Notes under the pieces: generated by a model
Told to the model about the DNA's origin: nothing
Seen by the model: only the letters and a program-made list of their open reading frames with translations
The model's database searches: none
In this document: one piece after another, positions 313 through 16,976 of the stretch
How positions within the stretch are numbered: position 1 is the first letter of the stretch
Layout of the letters: every line of letters starts with the position of its first letter
Source: Amoeboaphelidium protococcarum X5
Taxonomy: Eukaryota > Fungi > Aphelidiomycota
Length of the DNA stretch: 16,976 nt
Direction: 5' to 3'
Assembly (NCBI GenBank): GCA_023515725.1
Contig: JALDTO010000134.1
Coordinates: forward strand, 1 to 16,976
Made by a program: the position numbers and the translations under genes

Positions 313-2376
313 TCACTTGCCCAAATTGCTAATAAGTTACTCCACATTGTGTAGTTGCATTTGTAAATCACCTTCAGTCTTCAACTTCTCAATCTAATTC
401 TTCTCCAGTGTGATACCTGAAGCTGATTTTAAATGCAACTGCTGAATTGCACGCAACTTTCTCTATAATCCCAGAGCCTTCTTTTCCAGTACATCTCTTT
501 CCGTCTTTATCTCATTACTTACACCAACTGCGTCCACGCGTCCATTGCTACTGTCAGACTTGAGTTCAACGCGCTACTTCTCCACCGAATCTACCACAGA
601 CGAAGTCTTTGATTAGCGATCCTACCGAGATCCTGAATCTTGGTGTAATTTCGACTACTTCCCGTTATTAGATGATGGTGAAGATGATGACTTCTTCTAA
701 TCATTGTTGGGAGTACTAAAACTAGCTCCAATAATTCCCCTGTTCTACTTTCTTAAATGAGGAGGAACGTAACCAGACTTTTACGCTCCATTAGACTGAC
801 CATTGGCAGATTGCTACTTTTTCAGTGTAATTTCTTGCAACTTGCCAGCATCAATCGTGATATCAATTTCTTTAATACCAGTACCCGTTGTAATCGATGA
901 TGATACCTGAGGACTAGCTACTAAAAAGCACTGATAAAGTTCTTTATATGACTTCTCCCACAACAAATCACCATAAATGTTACGCACTCTGAATCTATTA
1001 TCTACTCTAAGACGCGGGAAAGTGGTGGCACACACGATGCATACGCCCTTAGTGTCCGATCCTCCACTTGCACCATCTACTGAGGACATTGCAGTCACAT
1101 TGGACAACTCGATGAAAATCGGTGAATCTTCCTTATACTCAGCAATCAACTTTACGTCCAGCGCCAGATTACGGTTACCAGCAAGTAGACCGCGAGAGTA
1201 CAAATCCCAAATCTGAGTGTAGCCGGCCAGATTACCATATCCACCAAACAGTAAAAATCTGCCTTCCGGAGATATACGAACAGTATTACGTGCAAACTAT
1301 CCAAAATCAAACACTCGACTGCCTTTGGTGTTATATAGACCTGCACTACTTGGCGTGTTACCGTAAACCACCACAAAATTACTAATTTTATTCTACTCAG
1401 GCAGCCAGGTAAAGTCGTGGATGGGGCCAACCTTATCAAGACCAACTGTAGTACCTATTCCTTCTTGCAGATCAGTGACCGCGGAACCAGATAACTAACT
1501 ATTAAACAGATAAAGCTTCTAAATTCCATAATAAGATTTGTTGGACTTGTCAACGTCTATGGTGCACAACGCAAGACAATGCTGTCCAGAGGTGCTCCAT
1601 TTAAAAGTGACTTGATCAGCTTTAATCACAGCCTTCTCCCCTAGCAAGGTGACCGCGTTAGATTTCAAGTCATACTAGAACATTCTAATAAAAGCACTGG
1701 TATCATTATTCAGCTGAGTGGCGTAAGTCATGATGTATACACAGTTGCCATCACTCACCACTGGACACACCTGGAACTGTACCAACTGCAATCCCTCAAC
1801 TTGAACCATAGCCACGACTGCCTTGAATCCATCAGCACTATGACTAACTAAAGCCTTATTTCCTTCACCACGCCAAACCATAAAACGCTCCTACTCATCC
1901 CATTAAGGCCTCCACATGTCAATATTACGAATCTGATATGATGCCACGATAGAAGCATCGGTAGCTGAGATGATCTTTACATTATTCTTAGCCTCAGCCG
2001 CCGCCGCCGCCGATGATGATGAACCATTTGACACGTCCACCTGCGGCATATCCTTCATACGAGTGTACACAGCGACATAACCACCACTCGGACTGACAAG
2101 ATAATCGTGAATATTAGGCAACTGGAAATGCACCACTTGATCCGAGGAAGAAGATTCAGTCAGAGACAATCGCCTAATAACAAGACCTTGAGAGTGCAAG
2201 AATACTCCAACACGACCATTAGCAGAGAACTGGCAGCTCTTGATAGTAAAACCAGAGGCTCCATTCGCACCTTAAACTTTCTACGGTGGTGATAACTCTT
2301 TAATACTCACAGAGCTCAACTACGGAAATAGATGCCTTTCCACACCTTGATCAGAACGCGTCTCTATTGCAATCAT
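313..2376 (-). CDS. EIF2A: Eukaryotic translation initiation factor 2A, ~687 aa, intronless, read with TAA/TAG=Gln
   Basis: ORFs 1903..2199, 1675..1881 and 814..1203 share one frame from ATG 2376 to TGA 313-315. Motifs: WRPQW, DVDKSNKSYYG, DKVGPIHDFTW, RNTVRISPEGRFLLFGGYGNLAG, ATTFPRLRVDN, YVPPHLR, C-terminal RKLRAIQQL..LEKNQIEKL. Confidence 0.93.
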
Positions 2377-2515
2377 ATTAAATCTTCCAAATTCAAAGTT
2401 CTATCAATCTATACACACTTAGAGAGGAGACTATATATTGGAATAGTATACCTAGGATATTAGTACCACCAAAAAAATGCGAGATGATAACAGAAAATGT
2501 GCCAGTAAATTAACA

Positions 2516-2535
2516 ACACACACACACACACACAC
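2516..2535. repeat. (AC)10 microsatellite in the divergent EIF2A/WD40 intergenic region
   Basis: Read directly from the sequence. Confidence 0.9.
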
Positions 2536-2900
2536 CTAAAGATGAACAGTCACTCCAACTACAGAGAAAAGACAATGATGAAGAGAAAATGAAAAAGAAG
2601 AACGGGAAAGAAAATCGAGGGAAAACGGCAGAGATCAACTCACCCACCCCGAGTAGCTTGAGGAACAAAAAGAAGAAACGAAGAGAGCTCTTCAGTAAGC
2701 GGCAACACTCTCGGTCTGTCTCAGCAGAATTCGGGTAAGGTCGTCCGTCACTGAGCAGAGTCAGTCTCTCCTCTTTCGTTTTGAAGGAAAAAAGAGTTGT
2801 TTCGTCTTAGTTTACTGCGCGATTATTAATTCCACTCTATCTAAAGAGTCTAATCTTTATCATTACAAAAAGGAGTGGTCTTAAGTTATCATCATAGGAC

Positions 2901-5162
2901 ATGCTGCGATTAAGTAATGTTAATGCATCTCTGGGAGTCAGGCTCTGTGCGGTGAAGAATGTTCTCATTCGTAGTGATGGTGGTACTGCTACTAGTGATG
3001 AGGAAGTGGATGACCAGTGTGGCCTAATTAAAGACATTAATTAGAAGAATTCTAATTCTAGTTGGTTTTAAAAATATGAAGTTATAAACAATAGTAGTAA
3101 TAATAGTAATACTAATATTAAAGGGAACGATACTGATAATGTAAATGCGGATAATGATGTCAACTCTGTCATGATTTCGTAGAACCGTGTTATAATGGCT
3201 CAGAATTTCCAAAAGATCATCTCAGCATTGACCGTAAAAACTGTCTTGACTTGCGTTGACTCTGTGTAATTGGTATCGCAAAGTCTCTCTAAATCTGAAG
3301 AGTCGATTAGTAATGCTCAGATTGTGGCAATTGGCTCTGCGGATGGTCAAATTTTGTTACTCAACACGAGGACGTTAAAGTACAGGCGATTGCAAGTTGG
3401 ACAATGTCCTATTAGTCGCGTTGAGTTGATTATTAGAAATGAAAATAGAACTCATTCTAATTCATAAGTAGGAGATGATTCCAAGTTTACTGTATTCCTA
3501 ATTGCCTCAGTTACATCTGGTCATTTTGTGGTGCTTAACATATGTAGACTTTCAGATGACCTGTCTGATGTTGGAGAAAGTATTGCCAAACGGTCATAAT
3601 AGCTTCATACTTCCGATAGCAAGGATAATCTTTAGTAGAGTTAATAGTAGCGGTACTATACCATAGTTTCTGATCAGTTTAAGAATGGGATATACTGCTT
3701 TAAGTTGCATTAACCTGCCAGGATAAAGAGTGGAAGATTAGATTTGGAGAATAATGCGGATAGATTGACTGACCACGTCTTTGATCCTTCAATTGATGCA
3801 GAAGACCAGTATGATGGTGGTAATAGTACTCTCACCGGTGATCGATAGTAATCTGCTCCTTAAAAGTATAATTGTGGATTGACTTCATTTTCAGTATCGC
3901 CAGATCATTCTAAAGTTGCTATTACTACCACGAGTGGACATTGTTTTCTATTTAAAGATTTTAATCATCTTTTGGATAGGATGTTATCAATTTCAGGTGG
4001 TAATACTAAGAATGGCAAGTCTAACAAGTCGTTGAGAGATTCTACAGACGGAGTTGGTAGTAGTGGTGGTGGTAGAAGCAATTTAATACGACTCAGCGAT
4101 ATCTATTAGTCAATGTACGGTTCAGCTTTATGCTCGGCTTGGTCCAATGATTCTCGATTATTGTCATTCGGTGGCCAGGATGATTTGATTTATGTTATTG
4201 ATTCCCATACTTCCGAGTACTTGTACAAGCTGGATGGACACTAAAATTTTGTCAACTAGATTCTATTTCTCAATTCAGTTTAGTATGATAAGTATCTTAG
4301 GCAAGGTATGGCTTAAAATTCTTCTGGTATATTCCCTTAATGTCTATGGCCTTCCGACTAGGCAGTGGTTTAATCCACGGAATAATCTTCATCATCATAA
4401 GATTGGACGCTGTAGTAAGGAAATACGCTAGCTACCAAGTCTGTCAATGTGGAGAGTAACCATCTGAGTGGTAATTATATATTGGTCAGTGTCGGAGAAG
4501 ATTGTAGACTTTGCGTTTGGAATAACATCCATCTGTAAGAAGAGTAATATCAAGGTCGAGAACAGAGACGAAGATCGACATTGAATAGATCCATGTTGAG
4601 GTCTTCATCTGCCGCAGGTGCTGCCTCTCACCTAGGTGGGTAACAAAATGATACCAGTCCATCTAGAGAAGTAGGATAGTAATAGCGATCAACATCGTCT
4701 TCTAGAGCGTCAGATTATGATAATGAACTTACTACTACGCTGCCTTTATAGAAATTCAATGGTGACTCGGACGCAGAGAGTAAAAAGTCCCGAAAATCTT
4801 ATTTGAACAGATCTCTGCGGTCTCTATCTAGGCTGTCTAATAAGATTCTGTCTAAACCGTAATAGTAAAGGGCTACCGATGCCTATTCTAAGCATCTGCT
4901 GTAATCTGACAATGACTCTAGATTGAATGCTGTTATTGTGCATGCTTATCCATTCAGCTAGAAGACTCCCGGTGGTGGCGGTGGTAATGAAAATGCTATT
5001 CCTAGTGTTAGTTTAGATATACGGACATTGCAGAGTTCATAAGCCGTTAATGTACATAAAACACCATGCTCTGATCTTTGTATGTCAGACGATTGTTTTA
5101 TAACATCCTCTCGTGGTGGATACATCAGCAAGTTGGACATTAGTCTGAAGAAGCTGTAGTGA
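2901..5162 (+). CDS. WD40-repeat protein of the WDR20/DMWD/CreC family, ~753 aa, read with TAA/TAG=Gln
   Basis: One frame with no TGA from ATG 2901 to TGA 5160-5162, containing ORFs 3270..3467 and 3879..4109. Motifs SMYGSALCSAWSNDSRLLSFGGQDDLIYV, LDGHQNFVNQILF, LVSVGEDCRLCVW and ITSSRGGYI resemble WDR20/CreC blades. Start uncertain: the frame is also open from ATG 2589. Confidence 0.75.
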
Positions 5163-5388
5163 AGCAGCATTGGTTATATTTTCTGTTACTATAGTGCTCT
5201 GCTAACATAAAAGTCAAAACTTCATTTTGTGTAAAAGTAAGAGATAAAACTCACAATAGTAATCGTAACTTATCGGAAGTATCCCTTTTATTCAATGCAT
5301 CATCATTTTTAAACTTAGAGCAATAAGCACATTCTTTTCAGCTGTACACACATTCAAAAAGAATTTTCCACATCTCTTACTTGTTCCA

Positions 5389-7734
<2,346 letters not shown>

Positions 7735-8225
7735 ATCTAAGTACAGTATTAAAGTATCGATACACTCCAAGTCAAGACAATCAAAACTAAATAAATAATG
7801 AAAAAATATTAACAGAGATAGTGTGCAACTATCGTCGGTAATAGTGAGTGACTGTAATGAGTGACTGAATGATTTTTCAAAGACAAAAGAAACGGCGCTG
7901 AAACAAAGCAAACTCAACAGATCTGAAACGATATAAATATAGCCTATGATCGTTTAGGCCTTCTTTATTGATAAACTGCGCAACGTATTTATGGCGGACT
8001 TTTATGATATTCAATAAGGATGAAGGATTTAGTTTAGTCTACTCATACGCAGTTTGGCGCAATGCATACACTTTATCTAACGTAGTGGGTGTTCAGCCAG
8101 AACTAAAGATGCCGCCTTTCATCGCCAGAAACCAGTAAATACAGTAGAGCGAGTAATAATAAAACACCATTTTATTTAACAGCTCACAATACAATTTAAC
8201 ATATTATTAGCGTGGGATTACACAT

Positions 8226-8762
8226 TCAATAATTACGAGGACTTCTTCTTAAGGGAGGATCTTCATAAACTTAGTCCTCCCGCACATCAACATGCTCTTA
8301 ACCACGATTAGCAACATCGGCGTAAACAACGCGAGCATTCCCCAGTTTCTGATTTATTTGCTGCAGCGTTACCTACTATTGCTACAGCGTTACCTACTAT
8401 TGCTGCAGCATTACCTACTATTGCTACTGTGCCATATGAAATTGCTACATTGTAGTCTGCATCTACTGCATCATAGTCCGCAACTCAGTGATGGAACGGG
8501 TTTAATTCGCATATCCAGTTCTCAATGTAGCTATACCATCTCTCAAAGCAAGTAGATCAGCTGCATTGACATCTTGAGCAAGCAAAAGGGCGTGTTCTTA
8601 GCGATGCTTCTCCAGCGCAACTCTCTTAACTAATTCACGCTCCTCCTGGGTGAGGTTTTCCAAATTTTACAACGACAGCCATGTAGAGTTCTTGAAGTCC
8701 GCATGTAGCAATTCAGCATGCGTTTGAGGATTTTCGGGTGGATTACACGGTATTCGAGGCAT
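8226..8762 (-). CDS. Hypothetical 178-aa Gln-rich coiled-coil protein, no family recognised
   Basis: ATG 8762 to TGA 8226-8228 with TAA/TAG=Gln: MPRIPCNPPENPQTHAELLH...MQQMQTTMQQFHMAQQQQQVMLQQQQVTLQQQQVTLQQINQKLG...DPPLRRSPRNY. It fills the gap between PAK and NOP2, and an AATAAA lies ~50 nt downstream on the same strand. Confidence 0.65.
8359..8426. repeat. 21-bp tandem repeat, 3 copies plus a partial, encoding QQQQV(T/M)L heptads on the - strand
   Basis: tgctgcagcgttacctactat / tgctacagcgttacctactat / tgctgcagcattacctactat at 8359, 8380 and 8401. Confidence 0.9.
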
Positions 8763-9027
8763 TTCGTTAAATAGATACGCTTTAATGTTCAGACTTGGGA
8801 TGTGGTAGAAGGTAAAGAGAGAATGTCGGCGAAATCTCGTTTTAAATCAGATTTTGCGCCGAAACGGGAAAGTGCATTGAAAAAGTAAAAGCCTTACATA
8901 GAATTTGAAGTCTCGCCGCTGGCTTAGTAAAGTGCTAAAGTGGCGTGTAGTAATTTAGGGAAGAAATCAAGCGCCAGATATAACTTTAAAGTAGTCTATT
9001 AATCAATAGATCATTTGTATACTTCAC

Positions 9028-10950
9028 TCATTTGGACATGGATGAGATTATCTTGGCATCGGCAGCGTCATCAAAGTGCGCCACCTCCTCATTATTACGC
9101 GACTTTTAAAAGTCTTTCCCAACCTACTTAGACTCTGCAGATTACTTCGCTGCCGCAGGAATCTTGTTCGACATTTTCTTAAACTTGGCAACATAGAAAC
9201 CATCCATATTATGCGTATGTGGATAGTATCTGCGCGTCAGATTCAAAGTTTAGGAGAACTTTTTCCCTCTAAACTTGGTGAATCCCTACTCACCAAAATC
9301 TAAACCAGTTGATACTAACTTGACGTTAGGACGCTTACTCAATGCATAGTTGACAACCTCTTCATTCTCCTCCACCATGATAGAGCAGGTGGAGTACACG
9401 ATATATCCTCCAGTCTTGGATGTTGCATCAACAGAGTCAATAGCGCTAAGAATCAGCTCCTTCTGCAGTTTGGTGAGCATCTAAAAGTCATCGGCACTCT
9501 TGTTAACTTTTACCGCCTAATCTTTAGATATTACACCAGTACCTGAACATGGCGCGTCCAAAAGTACTCTATCAAATCCTCCGATAACTTCAGGAAATTT
9601 TCGCCCATCATAATTGCAAATCACCGTATTCTTGATACCCATTCTGTGGATATTGGCAATGAGGCCTTTACAACGATCCTTACTCGCGTCATTGGCAAAC
9701 AGACAACCGGAATTTTTCATCAGAGCGGCAATGTAAGAAGTCTTACCACCAGGAGCTGAGGCCATGTCCAAGATACGCTCATTCTCTTTTGGCGCCAGTG
9801 CCATCACAGGCAGGAACGATGATGCAGATTGTAGCATATACTAACCTGACATATACTCTGGCGTGGCACCGATAGGGACAGCAGAATCGTAGATTGTCAA
9901 ACCAACCTTTGACCACTTACCAATAGGATCCAAATTCACACCTCTATTAATGAGAGCTTATGCTACATCACGTCTCTTGGCCTTCAGCGTATTCACTCTG
10001 ATAGTTACCGGACGAGGCACTTCATTAGCCTCCAAGAACGAAATGCATTCAGCAGGAGTGAATAGCTATAACAATTTCTCCATCAGAAACTCGTTATATC
10101 CATAATAAGAGCATAGATCTTCCTTAAAGCGCGCCATATATTCTTTTCTACTGATACCATCCTGGTGAAGTTGGGAGAAATTAGACAATACGCGACTAGT
10201 TTCCTGGATTCTCTACTGAATCAGTTGGATATCAGGAGCGATAACAGAATTCTTTTCCATAATCGAACCATCGGGCAACTGAATCTACTAGGACTGATCA
10301 ATATTGAGAATAGGCTCCTGGTCCTCTTCCTCTTCATTAATGTCAGCATCAATTCCATCCTCCTAAAGGTCACCACCAAATTCGTCATCTTCGCTGCCAC
10401 TGATCTGTGAAAAATCGTCAAAATCATCGCCAACTTCTTCACCACCGCTCATATCATCCCATAGCATATCTCCATTATCACTACCATCTACAGAGCCAAG
10501 ATCCAGCTCATTTATATCTTCCGCATCTTGCCCCTCCTGGCCATCATCCTAAACCATGTCATTCGCATTAGAAAGCTCAACTTCAACTTCAGAGGATCCG
10601 TCAACAACTTGATCGTCATCCTCCTCCATTTCGCTTCCAAAATCAAACGCGTCATGTGCTTCATCTTCACTACTATTATATCTGTCCAGTCTCTTTTGAA
10701 TCTTTCTAGACTTTCCCTTCATCAGAGTGGTTTCTGTGCTAGTTTCCGCAACCTCAGTCTGGAGCAAATTCTCCACTTTTTCATCAGGTACGTCCTTAGC
10801 GACAGTCGCATCCTCACGCTGAATCTCAGTTTGACTCTTCTTCTTAGCTAGTTGAAGTCTCTTTCCCTTAGAATCTTTCTAAATCGGCAATGGATCCCTC
10901 TACTTCAACCTAGCTTTACGTCCTTTACGCGTCAAAAATTCCTTTGGCAT
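9028..10950 (-). CDS. NOP2: 25S/28S rRNA m5C methyltransferase Nop2/NSUN1, ~640 aa, intronless
   Basis: ATG 10950 to TGA 9028-9030 in one frame. Acidic N-terminal region, then [65 protein letters not shown]. Confidence 0.95.
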
Positions 10951-11201
10951 TTTATAATTTGATAATTATCACTATATATCTTTCGCACAATAGTTTAATG
11001 GAAAACAAAGAGAGGGCAAACTGAAAAATGGTCAAAGTTTTGACAACAGAAATTTACCGCGTTCAACTCTAACGGTATGAAGCTTTGACTAAACAAAACA
11101 ACTTTAATTAAAATCGCGATTAAAAAGAGATTTGCATCAAAGTGACAACGTATAATATAATAAAGTCACTTTATCGTTCCATTATGCCGCTACAATGTAA
11201 A

Positions 11202-14156
11202 TCACTCCTCAGCAGCCAAAGCCTTCTTCTGAGTGAGCGTAATCTTGTCACCCAAACTCAGGGCTATTCCTTGAGTTCTGCTTCTGATACGGATGCTTCC
11301 ACGGATTGTTTTATCAACAGGATTCTACTCCATGCTGATATTGGCCAAAGCATCTTCACCGAACAAGGAGCGAGCATACAGATTAGCTGAAAGGAAACCG
11401 CAACTGCCAGCCAAAGCCTTCTCCGGCGTCAGACACTTCATATTCGTGCACTTCAACACATGCTTCAGATATTCGTGTATATCCGTGATGTTGGTGTTAA
11501 TATTGATCTTATTCTCCCACTCAAACTCAGTCCACATGGATCTAAATTCATTGTTGGTGCACTCTGCCGGGCGAATATAGTCCATAATGTCAACGTGGAT
11601 ATCCTTCAACAGGATGACAGTAGAATCCGATGAACCCTTCTGATCATACACAATGTTGCCAAATATGACTCCAGTCTCAGTAGAAGAAACTTTAATATTA
11701 GCCTTGATGGAGTGGAATCCATGAGCTCCCAAATTAACCGCGGTTGGTCTCTCTACGATCTTTAAATCACCTAGAGTAGAGAATTCAATAGTCAAATTTT
11801 GCAGCGTGGCAGTGGTTTGATTAACCAACAACACATCTAGTAAGATATCATACTGATGTACATCCACGTACGCTTCTGCGTACACAGTATCGGAATATCC
11901 AGTTAGTTGGACAACACGATTCAGCTTATTACTACCGACACCTTTAATATCAGATGAGCCAGTTGCTTTGGCAATATCTTACTCATACGCAGAAGCTATA
12001 GCATTAGCACCAGTCTTGGTCTTGATCTGTCTGAACAGGACCAACTATTCCAGATTCTGAGAGGCAGCAGACTGAGAACCCAAGCCCACGCCGCCAGCAC
12101 CAGAAGACAGATTCAATGACAATTGAGCCATCTTCTTCTTTCCCTCATTCACCTGCATCAACTTGGCGAATACTTCATGGGAATGCTTCAATAGGATAAC
12201 ATTCATCTTGGAGACTGCTTGGCTATTGCTCAACATTTTCAAACAGCTCAACAATCTCCCATAAGAATCTTCATCAATTTGGGCAGATACGATGCTACTC
12301 TAACCGACGCGGATGACGCTAGTGATGATCAGCATGGACAATGCCTTCAACGAGTTGGTCAAATTCATATCAGCGCCAGGTGTCTGAGCCAATCTAAATA
12401 TCAATTTCACCATAGAAACTCCCAACACTCCGGCCAGGAAGTAATCTCCCTCCAAAATGAGTGCTCTCAACTATGGCTTACTTAAGCCGGCAACAGTGTT
12501 CTAAAGCGTAGTAGGACTGACATGGCTATAAGTAGTCTCGGTGGCATATGTACCATCAGCCAATACCTTGGTCTTAGTCACCGGTTTCATATCCGCACCA
12601 TTCACCTGTTACTACCCATCATTTTCATTCGACAGGTCATTCATCAACACTTCTTCCGCGGCCATTCTCTCACTTTCCAAAATCGGCAACTTTCCAATAC
12701 TATCACGAATCACTCCGAAAGCAGATTCAATCAACCTCTGATCATTGCAATACTCTCCAATCACCCACAGAGCTCCACGCAAAACCTTACCGTTCTTCAT
12801 ATCCTTGAAATTCTCAAATAACTTTACCAAAATCTCATGACGCATTGCACTGTTCTTCTCCATAACTTCGCGGATGAAAGAAATAACGTCAAGAGCTGCA
12901 TTCGTATTAGAATCTCCCAAATACTCCATCAATACGTGAACCACCTCAGCGGAGCCTTCAGGGAATCTAAGGGCACATTGATGAATGGCATGGATCAACA
13001 ATTGGCGATACTCGGCACTCTTATCCTTGGCATTAGGATCTCTAGTCTTCTAGATCTCCTTCTAAAGGAAGCTGACAACTTCACGAATATTCTTAGTGGA
13101 CAGAAGATCCAGGGCCACACTAACAGCCTTCTTACAAACTTCAATGTCCGGACTGGATAGCACTCTTAGCACATCAATGGCCAAATCATCCAATACACGA
13201 TCATATTTGGTCTTAATCTCAGCCAGGCGATCCAAAACAATCAACTTGACATTATTATCACTCTCTTTCGTTGCCAGCTCGGCATAACACTTTCCAACAG
13301 CAGTGACAGCAGCAGGAGACTGTGTCAACATCATCAGAGTACCAGATGCCTCAAACTTCACCGCCGCGCTCTAAGTACACTCCAACAATGTGAGGATGGC
13401 CTTGATATAGGATGAGCGAGCCTCAGGATTACCGGTAGTATCTCTCTTAATCAGCTCAACAATTGCCAACTACATGTGATCGTCAAACTGGTCCACTCTG
13501 TCCAGCAGTGACATTAAGTAAACCAATGCACGATGATGATCGATGGAGGTGAGGGCAAGGAATGCATTACGCCTGCAGTTAGCATCCACCTCCTGCATCA
13601 GATAAGCCTGAACAATCTCACCAGCATCCGGGATAAGAGTCTCGTTGTATTTGAAGATGCTCATAATGGAGACGACTGCATTCTTTCTCACCAGAGAACT
13701 ACGATGCTCCAGACACTATCTGACACTGGGCACAAGTGGCTCCAACAGATCCGTCTCCCGCAACTTGCACAGCAGACGCAGAGTAGCTGCGCGAACATAC
13801 TCATTAGGAGATTGAAGATCATTTCTCAGGTAATTACACACCAGAATCATTTCTTATTTCAACTTTCCATCTGGATTCTTCTTAGGACACACCTCCCAGT
13901 ACACAAGCAACAGCTTCTTCAAGGTCTTGTTCTTACTAGGCAAGACAAAACGGATGACATGCATCATCATATCACCTGCCAGCTGAGTATCGCTACCTTG
14001 CATTGTAATTACCACCAGCGACTTCATGGCATCGATCTTTACACTCTCCGACTTGGACTCCAGGGCAGACTTCAAGTTTTTGACAGTAGCATCTGAGTCT
14101 TGTTCAATCCCACCAATTAACGTCCAACAAGTATCTTGCAGCATAGGTGTAGCCAT
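11202..14156 (-). CDS. COPB1: Coatomer subunit beta (beta-COP/Sec26), ~984 aa, intronless
   Basis: Six in-frame ORF fragments joined across TAA/TAG. Motifs: [89 protein letters not shown]. Ends at TGA 11202-11204. Confidence 0.96.
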
Positions 14157-14394
14157 TCTTAAAACTTTTTTCCTTGATGATAAAAAATGGATATAAACAC
14201 TGTAATTAGAGTTGTCACCTGAAATAGGCAACTAATTGAATGAATTGTAGAAAGAAGAAAGATAAATAACTATCTCGTACAAAGTGGGAGAGAGGAAGAG
14301 TTCGTTCAGTTAAATTTTTAGAAACACAAGCGCCTCGTCTCACACGTTTTATAGAGGAGAGAGAACTAAGCAAGGAATACGCAGGAATCAGAGT

Positions 14395-14412
14395 TGCAAC
14401 AACGTTGTTGCA
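14395..14412. other. Perfect 18-bp palindrome in the COPB1/TMEM18 divergent intergenic region
   Basis: TGCAACAAC|GTTGTTGCA; function unknown. Confidence 0.6.
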
Positions 14413-14525
14413 CAAAGTGTTGGCGACGAGCGAAACCACGTGAGTTAACGGACGGACATCGAGCTCGAAGGGGGAAAAATAGAAAGCGACTCCGCTCAAA
14501 ATCGCTCGTCGCAATAATAATCGAT

Positions 14526-15083
14526 ATGAATCTTAGTGCGGATTAGATATTTACCGTTGCGGATAGAGCGTTTCGAGATTTGAGACGCGATGCTTCGTGG
14601 TTTTTCAATAGAGTTAATTGGAGTGAACCGTTCATTGTGGCTCTGATACTGTTCCATGCTACTATGCTCACTGCGGCTTTAATTTATCGCAAAAATCATA
14701 ACGTTCTATTCGCTCTTCTTACGCTCTGTGGTAGGTTGATTACTTATTCGATTGTTGTGCCGATTGTAATAATTATAATGTAGCCGCGATTGTGCTGAAT
14801 GCCCAGCAGTTGAACGAATATGGACGCGTTTATTGGTCCAAATTCAGCTCTCAGCTATACTTTGATCGAAATGGTATATTTATCTCGGTGATGCTCAGTC
14901 TGCCTCTTGTTCTTACATCACTTGTTATATCTGTAAGTTTTATTTGGTAAAGCATTCGAATATTTTTGTCTCTCATTCTATTTTATATTTGTGATGTAGA
15001 TTCTGTTTGTGATGCGTGCCAGTTCAATGTTGATCCAGGTGAAACGGAAGCAGTTGTAAAGTACTGTTAAGAAGTAATAGTGA
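14526..15083 (+). CDS. TMEM18: Transmembrane protein 18 family; join(14526..14730, 14784..14932, 15000..15083), ~145 aa
   Basis: Motifs VNWSEPFIVALILFH, LNEYGRVYWSKFSSQLYFDRNGIFISVMLSLPL and basic tail LIQVKRKQL. Two GT-AG introns restore the frame. Ends TAA TAG TGA. Confidence 0.88.
14731..14783 (+). other. TMEM18 intron 1 (53 nt, phase 1)
   Basis: GTAGGT...ATGTAG; splicing restores the TMEM18 frame. Confidence 0.8.
14933..14999 (+). other. TMEM18 intron 2 (67 nt, phase 0)
   Basis: GTAAGT...ATGTAG; splicing gives VIS|ILFVMRASSMLIQVKRKQL. Confidence 0.8.
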
Positions 15084-15790
15084 TCGCTACATGTGGAAGG
15101 AAGCTTAAATTCACGATTCAAGAGTAATGTACTGCAAGCAAAAGTTTGAATAATATATTTTTGTTTAGTAAATTTCTGAATACCGGTAGTGTGTACTTTT
15201 GTGCGCAACATAGTTTGAACCTGATCAGCCCATAAATTTATCGTTATGATAAAATTGCAGCAAACTTATCCGAAGCATTATAAGAGAAGACGCGTGCATA
15301 ATATAATATGAAATGCCTGTACGAGGTTCTTGTCCAATGCGTAATTGAAGTTGTTGAAAACATATCAGTTTCGGTATCTGACAGCAGAGAAAAACTCTCG
15401 ACCTCGCCGACTAGTTCAATATCATTCATCATATCCATCTTTCTGCAGCATAATATCAGGCTAACTACTACGCGAACAGACGATGTATGAGTGTAGGATT
15501 TACCATAAATCCCTCTGGATTAAATGGCAACTTATTGAGCGTGATTTTAATTGAAGTCTTAAATAAGCGGAACACTTAATGAATGATATGATTATTCTAA
15601 AAGCGCATTGGTGTTCAAAGGCATTACAGTTCACCTTGACAACGCCCATTTATCATGAGATTGATCTCTAACGTTGAGATTGTAAAATAACACTTACTTT
15701 GCTTCATACTCGATATATTGTTATTATCATTTGTATCAGCCAGGAAATTTGGATACCATCTTGTTTGTAATAACAAATCTATCAGATATC

Positions 15791-16976
15791 ATGTCAAAAA
15801 TTAACGCTAGCGAGTTGATAGTGTCAGCTCAGAATCCTGATCCATCTCAGCATTTGACCATGCTAACCAAGATTGGAGAGGGAAGTTATGGGTCAGTGTA
15901 TAAAGTGCTGCACAAGGCAACTTCAACTCTGGCAGCGCTCAAGATTGTCCCCGTTGACCAGGAGAATGGTGAGACGATTGAAGATCTCATGAAAGAGATT
16001 GAGGTTATGCGTGGCCTGGACTCTCGCGGTATTGTGAAATTATTTGGTAGTTGGTTTCTGGAAGAAAAGCTGTGGATGCTCATTGAGTACTGTGCTGCCG
16101 GCAGTGTGTCCGATATCATGAAGGTGTGCAAGTGTACAATGACAGAGCAAGAGATTGCATGCATCATGAAACAGGTGATGGAAGGCCTCGCCTATCTGCA
16201 TGAGCGTAAAAAGATTCACCGTGATATCAAGGCTGGTAATATTCTGATTAATGACAAGGGTGAAGCTAAGCTGGCAGATTTCGGTGTTGCTGGTCAACTC
16301 TCCGATTCTGTTGCCAAGCGTAATACTGTCATTGGTACTCCTTTCTGGATGGCTCCCGAGATCATCATGGAGGTTGGCTATAATACTGGAGCTGACATTT
16401 GGTCCATCGGTATCACGTGCATAGAAATGCATGATGGTAAACCTCCGTATCATAATATCCATCCGATGCGTGCCATCTTCATTATACCGTCCAAGCCGCC
16501 GGCAACATTAGAGAAACCATAATCTGTTAGTGCTGCATTCAACAAATTCATTGCAAGGTGTCTGACAAAAAGTCCAGATTAAAGACCGACAGCTTTGGAA
16601 CTGCTGAAAGATCCTTTCATTGTAAATGCGCCATCCGTGAATAGCGGAGCTTTGACTGAGAAAGTTGCAAGAGCGGTTGAACTGATATCGCAGGGTAAAC
16701 TGAGCAGCGATAGTGATGATGAGGAGGCTGGCGATGACAATGATGATGAAGACTCGAATAATGATAAATCAAGAAAAAGTAGCAATGTGTCCGACAATAT
16801 GACAATGATGTCGACAAAGAGTGGCAAGAGCTCAGCCGTAGATGATGGCACTGTACGATCAGTAACACATGACTTCAACACCATGTTGGTCAGTGGTACT
16901 TGTGAGAGTGTACTGAAACGGATCGTCTAAGGTTGAAAAATGATCAAAAATATCATGATTATGAGTGATAGATCTC
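15791..16976 (+). CDS. MST1/2 (Hippo/Krs)-like Ste20-family kinase, probably 3'-partial
   Basis: ATG 15791. Motifs KIGEGSYGSVYK, HRDIKAGNIL, DFGVAGQL, KRNTVIGTPFWMAPE, HPMRAIFIIPSKPP. Reads through TAA 16520 and TAA 16580 into ORF 16595..16930 (acidic linker with TM motifs). It either splices at 16889 or ends at TGA 16934-16936. Confidence 0.85.
16889..16971 (+). other. Possible phase-0 intron in the MST-like kinase
   Basis: GTCAGT directly after NTML and TAG at 16969-16971. Splicing would skip TGA 16934 and continue as NTML|I. Only 5 nt of the next exon are visible. Confidence 0.45.

Follow-up and report, generated by a model that had tools for sequence, protein, structure and literature searches.

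A nuclear code in which UAA and UAG (UAR) specify Gln and UGA is the stop codon (translation table 6) is used by ciliates, ulvophycean algae, hexamitid diplomonads and oxymonads, and the eRF1 motifs of these lineages are altered (PMC11687900), as was found here for Amoeboaphelidium protococcarum. PMC5304391 and PMC11687900 credit Karpov et al. (2013; PMID 23058793) with the finding that UAR means Gln in A. protococcarum. The reassignment is therefore already known, and public annotation applies it: KAI3641497.1 (NCBI; A. protococcarum, MIR68) already has Gln where the DNA reads TAG (twice) or TAA (twice). Unlike in the ciliates, algae, diplomonads and oxymonads, table 6 has a separate origin inside the Holomycota in this organism. 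The code change probably arose within the aphelids, because the genes of A. occidentale terminate with TAA, TAG and TGA.

Stop codons with a dual meaning, as described for Blastocrithidia and Condylostoma (PMC12153298, PMC10089648), form a second group of related systems. The tRNAs cognate to UAR are shared with A. protococcarum, and UAA also terminates translation there, as it possibly does in A. protococcarum. In Blastocrithidia and Condylostoma all three stop codons are reassigned and the dual meaning is forced, whereas in A. protococcarum none of 135 kinase matches uses UGA as a sense codon, and all genes that could be read completely terminate with it.

The window, i.e. the whole analyzed stretch of 16,976 nucleotides, is best explained as ordinary coding DNA of A. 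protococcarum (MIR68; probably strain X5), whose nucleus uses table 6 (probability about 0.96). A table 6 translation from this genome is identical to KAI3641497.1 (100% over 269 aa). The initial annotation, made from the letters of the window alone, had proposed A. protococcarum or a relative as the host and a new independent reassignment for any other lineage; the host is A. protococcarum itself, which excludes the latter.

Read with table 6, the window contains eight unbroken frames (Table 1). All seven TAA and TAG codons cited in the initial annotation were located at their coordinates, strand and frame, and the eight genes were confirmed to carry UAR codons in frame without a frameshift. 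The total is 143 (57 TAA and 86 TAG, besides one extra TAA in the repeat at the contig end that is not counted), compared to 55 CAA and 75 CAG in the same genes. The seven complete genes all end in TGA, and TGA is present at the seven corresponding gene ends of the homeolog on C264, so that this part of the earlier description holds as well. The homeolog of the window is colinear and 89–91% identical. Kinases, tRNAs and eRF1 occur in pairs, which indicates a genome-wide duplication, as has been described for A. protococcarum (PMC10608142).

Gene identities were assigned by Pfam and PDB searches with stop-free pieces. Such a piece of the eIF2A gene matched Pfam eIF2A with an E-value of 1e-14, and its TGA is retained in the homeolog, while the NOP2 gene matched yeast Nop2 (9e-54). 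For the WD40 gene the WD40-type matches were weak (44-aa piece). It ends in TAG-TGA, identical to the end of the homeologous ORF of 755 aa. The PAK kinase has the Cla4-like architecture PH-PBD-kinase, with Pfam matches for PH and PBD and the Pkinase domain at 5458–6225. Exon 2 of TMEM18 matches Pfam TMEM18, and its last three codons (TAA-TAG-TGA) are the same in the homeolog. The Gln-rich ORF is the least certain of the eight genes; its TGA is also found in the homeolog, to which the DNA is 79% identical, and a third, partial copy is located on C192. The MST-type kinase groups with aphelids in the tree (support 100/98). Its homeolog runs on to 516 aa, while the window copy departs from it at 16900 and enters a dispersed repeat (86% over 49 nt to L021 on C98, E-value 8e-11) that the homeolog does not carry; the TGA at 16934–16936 is thus not the true end of this gene.

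Table 1. Features of the analyzed window, read with translation table 6.
Feature	Position	Strand	Details
eIF2A	313..2376	-	687 aa; 5 TAA, 16 TAG; TGA end 313-315
WD40-repeat protein	2901..5162	+	about 753 aa, ATG start presumed; 23 TAA, 19 TAG
PAK kinase	5389..7734	-	760 aa; intron 7549-7611; 13 TAA, 15 TAG; TGA end
TAA in PAK Gly-rich loop KIG-Q-GASG	6199..6201	-	CAA in homeolog; Q in PAK1 and PAK3 structures
Gln-rich ORF	8226..8762	-	178 aa, without family; 5 TAA, 10 TAG; TGA end
NOP2 rRNA m5C methyltransferase	9028..10950	-	640 aa; 4 TAA, 13 TAG; TGA end
COPB1 (coatomer beta)	11202..14156	-	984 aa, intronless; 3 TAA, 11 TAG; TGA end
TMEM18	14526..15083	+	145 aa; exons 14526-14730, 14784-14932, 15000-15083
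MST/Hippo-type kinase, 5' part	15791..16900	+	TAA at 16520 and 16580; cut by repeat at 16900
Dispersed repeat, contig end	16901..16976		outside MST coding sequence

In a kinase scan of the whole genome, TAG or TAA was found in frame in 128 of the 135 Pkinase matches and TGA in none, so that in-frame UAR is present beyond chance. The comparison of the homeologs comprised 4,484 codon pairs. TAR was exchanged for CAR in 15.3% (38 of 248; 21 TAG/CAR and 17 TAA/CAR), which is similar to the synonymous TTR/CTR swaps of the Leu control (13.7%, 43 of 314), while non-synonymous controls reached 0–2.7%. No TAR/TGA swap was found among these pairs. UAA and UAG were thus shown to behave as synonyms of CAA and CAG in A. 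protococcarum.

The meaning of both codons was further analyzed in profile alignments, a check already named in the initial annotation. With orthologous sets, Gln was picked as the best amino acid for TAG (log-odds 52.9, runner-up −48.2) and for TAA (9.9, runner-up −2.3). As had been anticipated, TAR columns are enriched for Gln: among the well-conserved ones 14 of 18 are Gln columns (partly non-independent, since the two eRF1 copies overlap), compared to 28 of 1,102 columns overall. For TAG, Gln was found in 13 of 17 conserved columns. The TAG at residue 229 of COPB1 falls in a column with 94% Gln. TAA columns were fewer (eight, one of them strongly conserved), and one TAA falls in an eRF1 column with 100% Gln. 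The invariant Gln of the eRF1 GGQ motif is encoded by TAG in one copy (L033) and by CAG in the other (L034). Homeolog swap rates, conserved columns, cognate tRNAs and the public annotation together support the proposed reading of UAA and UAG as Gln.

The statement that the cited UAR codons occupy family-conserved Gln sites applies to some of them. It fits the PAK Gly-rich loop, with Q in PAK1 and CAA in the homeolog. For VAIK-Q it holds in part, with 57% Q in MST-type kinases. At the WRP-Q-W site of eIF2A (TAA 1903–1905) the homeolog has CAA. The column of KSPD-x-R (25% Q, 26% E) and the paralog of VVK-x-KEYG, which reads VVSRKEYG, do not agree with a conserved Gln.

The tRNA genes expected from the reassignment were detected: tRNAs with CUA and UUA anticodons are each present in two copies, one per subgenome. 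The two types are 92% identical to each other, 69–72% identical to tRNA-Gln(UUG) and at most 62% identical to every other tRNA found. This points to a single suppressor derived from tRNA-Gln, which may have been duplicated to give the CUA and UUA anticodons, and both types would be charged by GlnRS.

The N-domain of eRF1, whose inspection had also been proposed, is altered in the motifs TASNIKS and YxCxxxF by the substitutions T58A, S60V, R68K, L69Q, L126Q and K130R (human numbering), while GTS, E55, NIKS and S70 are unchanged. The two best PF03463 matches (L031 and L032) were found to be pelota and not eRF1. Position L126, which was described to shift stop specificity in yeast, is also correlated with variant codes (PMC4482090). 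It is Gln in A. protococcarum and mostly Phe in ciliates with UAR = Gln; the class of a Leu-to-Gln change is not given in the text of PMC4482090. Judged from these substitutions, the altered N-domain would read UAR poorly and leave all or nearly all termination to UGA. In the literature searched outside Karpov 2013 and Mikhailov 2022, no account of aphelid tRNA or eRF1 changes was found. A scan of metagenomes for eRF1 gave best matches of at most 79% and no additional lineage with this code.

The initial annotation regarded UGA as the only stop codon, which is valid for all gene ends in the window. Genome-wide, this is less clear, since both homeologs of a Ras-family gene contain KKCVVM-TAA in frame, 18 codons past the Ras domain, and the codon following this TAA is not TGA. 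A CAAX box has to be C-terminal to function. In a third Ras-family gene, KKCLIL is followed by TGA in frame. The CVVM-TAA ends argue against UGA as the strictly sole stop. Within table 6, UAA could therefore have a dual meaning, being read as Gln internally and, probably where the poly(A) tail is near, as a stop in a minority of genes; the retention of GTS, E55, NIKS and S70 in eRF1 is in line with this. However, the homeolog pair counts as one event and may carry a C-terminal extension past CVVM-TAA. In addition, the window offers no gene terminated by UAA, and TAA is not depleted ahead of TGA (6 of 290 codons at positions −6 to −15 and about 1.5% farther in; 29 genes). TAR directly before TGA was found in 3 of these 29 genes, which is not significant (p = 0.065).

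Other C-terminal motifs do not support the dual meaning of UAA. VEEVD was followed by TGA in four cases and by TAA and TAG in one each, and HDEL by TGA in seven and by TAA and TAG in two each. In both cases the controls match the totals in size, and these patterns were not used as evidence of stop usage. Likewise, a loose CAAX-TAA pattern was uninformative (209 matches compared to 193 in the control). A possible stop swap between KKCSIL-TAA (C52) and KKCSIL-TGA (C142) was rejected, because the two sites differ, in another frame, by CTA versus CTG, which are synonymous; no Ras match is present there. We consider the dual meaning of UAA possible but not the favored case, and it would refine the table 6 explanation rather than replace it. 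On this tentative view, UAA may still end some genes, such as GTPases ending in a CAAX box, with UGA as the full-time stop.

Removal of the UAR codons from the mRNA by splicing or U-to-C editing, with a ribosome on the standard code, is very improbable. No support for it was found, and editing is unnecessary because the cognate CUA and UUA tRNAs are present. Gene-restricted contigs of X5 and X7, runs classed as RNA by their coverage pattern alone, cross NOP2 and COPB1 and keep the UAR codons without splice joints. RNA-like NOP2 contigs retain TAA 9958–9960, and in the contig covering 9833–10308 none of the eight differences is at a TAR codon.

A different meaning of the two codons, such as UAA = Glu, is just as hard to sustain. 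It was favored by a first profile test, in which PAK was scored against MST paralogs (Glu 9.8 versus −0.2 for TAA); this test used the wrong family and was replaced by the orthologous sets, which gave Gln. The homeolog partners of TAA (CAA 13, TAG 10, CAG 4, GAA 1) and the 92% identity of the two suppressor tRNAs also speak against Glu.

That the in-frame codons reflect pseudogenes or assembly errors, with functional CAR copies elsewhere, would fit the second copies of a duplicated genome and the repeat that interrupts the MST copy, but the comparison of the homeologs and the lack of internal TGA genome-wide refute it. The second copies are equally rich in TAR codons, both eRF1 and both pelota copies contain TAR, neither TGA nor frameshifts accumulate, the same frames are found in independent runs and strains, and all eight differences of the RNA-like NOP2 contig are at third codon positions.

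For A. protococcarum, table 6 has to be applied throughout, since gene callers with the standard code fragment its genes. The organism represents a compact system for the study of codon reassignment, with two sister suppressor tRNAs, few eRF1 changes that can be tested in yeast, two subgenomes that display the synonymy of TAR and CAR directly and A. occidentale as an aphelid comparator with the standard code. If UAA does retain a role in termination, the nucleus of a relative of the fungi would use one codon with two meanings without being compelled to do so by the loss of all stop codons.

Under the standard code the window falls into fragments, whereas under table 6, with UAA and UAG read as Gln and UGA as stop, it holds eight uninterrupted frames. 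For the identification of the genes, stop-free pieces were searched one exon at a time; exons were joined solely for the codon counts and one comparison with kinases, while all database searches used unjoined pieces. The eight genes contain 57 TAA, 86 TAG, 55 CAA and 75 CAG codons. As the initial annotation had claimed, TAA and TAG (TAR) occur in frame without frameshifts, and the seven codons cited there were correctly placed, each reading TAA or TAG in frame with its gene. All seven complete genes end with TGA, and each terminal TGA is conserved in the homeolog, the second copy of the duplicated genome. The MST kinase departs from its homeolog at position 16900 and then enters a dispersed repeat (16901-16976), which breaks it at the contig end; this copy is therefore incomplete, as described earlier. 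The MST homeolog is intact at 516 aa, and at its end it looks similar to the A. occidentale ortholog, which bears SARAH there.

Features of the window and of related loci (C, contigs of the source genome; L, loci taken from it)
Feature	Location	Strand	Remark
eIF2A	313-2376	-	continuous under table 6
WD40 protein	2901-5162	+	continuous under table 6
WD40 gene end	5157-5162		TAG-TGA
PAK, PH-PBD-kinase	5389-7734	-	one intron; continuous under table 6
Gln-rich ORF	8226-8762	-	continuous under table 6
NOP2	9028-10950	-	continuous under table 6
COPB1	11202-14156	-	continuous under table 6
TMEM18	14526-15083	+	two introns; continuous under table 6
TMEM18 end	15075-15083		TAA-TAG-TGA
MST kinase	from 15791	+	incomplete copy; continuous under table 6
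MST homeolog end	L075:8396-8401		TAA-TGA
Peroxiredoxin ends	L024:238-240		TAA-TGA in one copy, CAA-TGA in the other
tRNA, anticodon CUA	C158:362956; C200:31431		two genes, among scored matches
tRNA, anticodon UUA	C158:383536; C200:16432		two genes, among scored matches

The Gln-rich ORF contains a 21-nt tandem unit and shows 79% identity to its homeolog, evolving faster than its neighbours. A third, partial copy lies on C192, and the ORF could be either a genuine orphan gene or a product of repeats. The contig start (1-211) has a pair of 57-nt direct repeats (77% alike, spacing 72) as well as four tandem units of 11-12 nt. These repeats do not align to the homeolog and might be one end of a mobile element.

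The homeolog of the whole window on C264 is colinear with 89-91% identity, and a genome duplication of A. protococcarum has been described (PMC10608142). Across the 4,484 codon pairs that could be aligned, TAR was exchanged with CAR (CAA/CAG) in 38 of 248 cases (15.3%). For Leu TTR/CTR, which served as the synonymous control at the first position, the rate was 13.7% (43/314), and the non-synonymous controls gave 2.7% (Tyr/His), 1.0% (Phe/Leu), 0.9% (Ser/Pro), 0.6% (Glu/Lys) and 0% (Cys/Arg). TAA was paired with CAA 13, TAG 10 and CAG 4 times, TAG with CAG 20 times, and no TAR/TGA pair occurred in the 4,484.

Foreign homologs were compared using reference sets for eRF1 (metagenomic loci, n = 80), PSMB5 (n = 119), COPB1 (n = 270) and MST (n = 120). 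The best residue was Gln both for TAG (log-odds 52.9, runner-up −48.2) and for TAA (9.9, runner-up −2.3). Gln columns made up 14 of 18 well-conserved TAR sites vs. 28 of 1,102 overall, with the two eRF1 copies overlapping. One eRF1 homeolog encodes the invariant Gln of the GGQ motif by TAG, its partner by CAG, and the WRP-Q-W codon is CAA in the homeolog. The sites cited earlier as family-conserved Gln were only partly so: KIG-Q-GASG is (Gln in PAK1, CAA in the homeolog), but neither KSPD-x-R (25% Gln) nor VVK-x-KEYG is.

The proposed aphelid host, A. protococcarum, was identified by a stop-free piece of PSMB5 matching MIR68_000627 of this species to 100%, and the MST kinase clusters with aphelids in the tree (support 100/98). 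The full table 6 translation of PSMB5 equals KAI3641497.1, in which two TAG and two TAA codons appear as Q. Judged by accession ranges (PMC10057920, PMC10608142), the strain is probably X5. A. occidentale was rejected as source, since its MST kinase is 66% identical and its genes end with TAA, TAG and TGA.

Two tRNA genes each with CUA and UUA anticodons were found among 63 scored matches of 1,171 candidates. The two types share 92% identity and are separated by 15-21 kb in each subgenome; both come closest to tRNA-Gln(UUG) (69-72%; any other tRNA among the 63, 62% at most). A single tRNA-Gln-derived suppressor was presumably duplicated later, giving rise to both. No tRNA-Gln(CUG) was present among the 63 scored matches of 1,171 candidates. 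All four genes (L056:206-279, L057:181-254, L064:186-260, L065:182-256) carry a U1-C72 mismatch and a 27:43 mismatch, which leaves a 4-bp anticodon stem. In Blastocrithidia, a stem of 4 bp helps tRNA-Trp in UGA readthrough (PMC12153298), a possible parallel. Near tRNA genes, at a few hundred bases, two Gag-like ORFs in the host code with a terminal CCHC zinc knuckle (L005:1908-2855, L025:1920-2876) look like tRNA-adjacent retroelements.

The eRF1 retains GTS, E55, NIKS, S70 and the Y, C and F of YxCxxxF. Its domain 1, whose inspection had been suggested, is altered at T58A, S60V, R68K, L69Q, L126Q and K130R. Among 80 homologs, the usual residue stands at these positions in 99% (T58), 86% (S60), 100% (R68), 90% (L69), 90% (L126) and 98% (K130); L69Q is also present in 10% of them. 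Position 126 is correlated with variant codes in ciliates and alters stop specificity in yeast (PMC4482090). That text states no effect for Gln at 126, and poor recognition of UAR by this eRF1 is an inference.

The runs X5 and X7 cover genes without intergenic DNA and are therefore probably RNA. They contain no joints in NOP2 and COPB1, and a run contig over 9833-10308 shows eight differences; every one falls on a third codon position, outside the TAR codons. With these runs as probable transcripts, TAR codons are not removed by editing or splicing.

That UGA is the only stop holds for the seven complete genes, and no case of residual UAA termination was found within the window. Elsewhere, UAA might also terminate some genes, although the odds are somewhat against it. 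Both copies of a Ras-family gene read KKCVVM-TAA in frame, 18 codons past the Ras domain, and the following codon is not TGA. A CAAX box must be terminal, so either UAA stops here or the lipid anchor of the protein is gone. Against general 3′-proximal termination, TAA is not depleted at positions −6 to −15 before TGA (6 of 290 codons, 29 genes), and TAR immediately before TGA is only suggestive (3 of 29 genes, fixed set, p = 0.065); such codons are possibly old stops. EEVD and HDEL patterns favoured TGA, but at the level of the controls.

Further observations concern other loci. The mitochondrial contig (C346, L066; 28,427 bp) carries a Trp/Gln/Asn/Tyr tRNA cluster and a cob exon in fusion with an intron ORF resembling homing endonucleases. 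In the rDNA unit (C233:158,000-166,000; L067, L068, L078), the 5S gene adjoins the LSU end on the opposite strand, and 5.8S is present twice at a distance of 1.5 kb, possibly an assembly artefact. A 222-aa ORF (L013:1865-2530, minus strand) begins much like a signal peptide and contains repeats of the KKDYEK type.

Across the genome (23.6 Mb), TAG or TAA occurs in frame in 128 of 135 Pkinase matches, TGA in none of the 135; both eRF1 and both pelota copies also carry TAR. In-frame TAR codons are thus a genome-wide trait. The claimed reading of UAA and UAG as Gln is borne out by homeolog exchange, profiles, the CUA/UUA tRNAs and the public protein, and this nuclear code of A. protococcarum is real and well supported. 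It was already known, reportedly first from this species in 2013.
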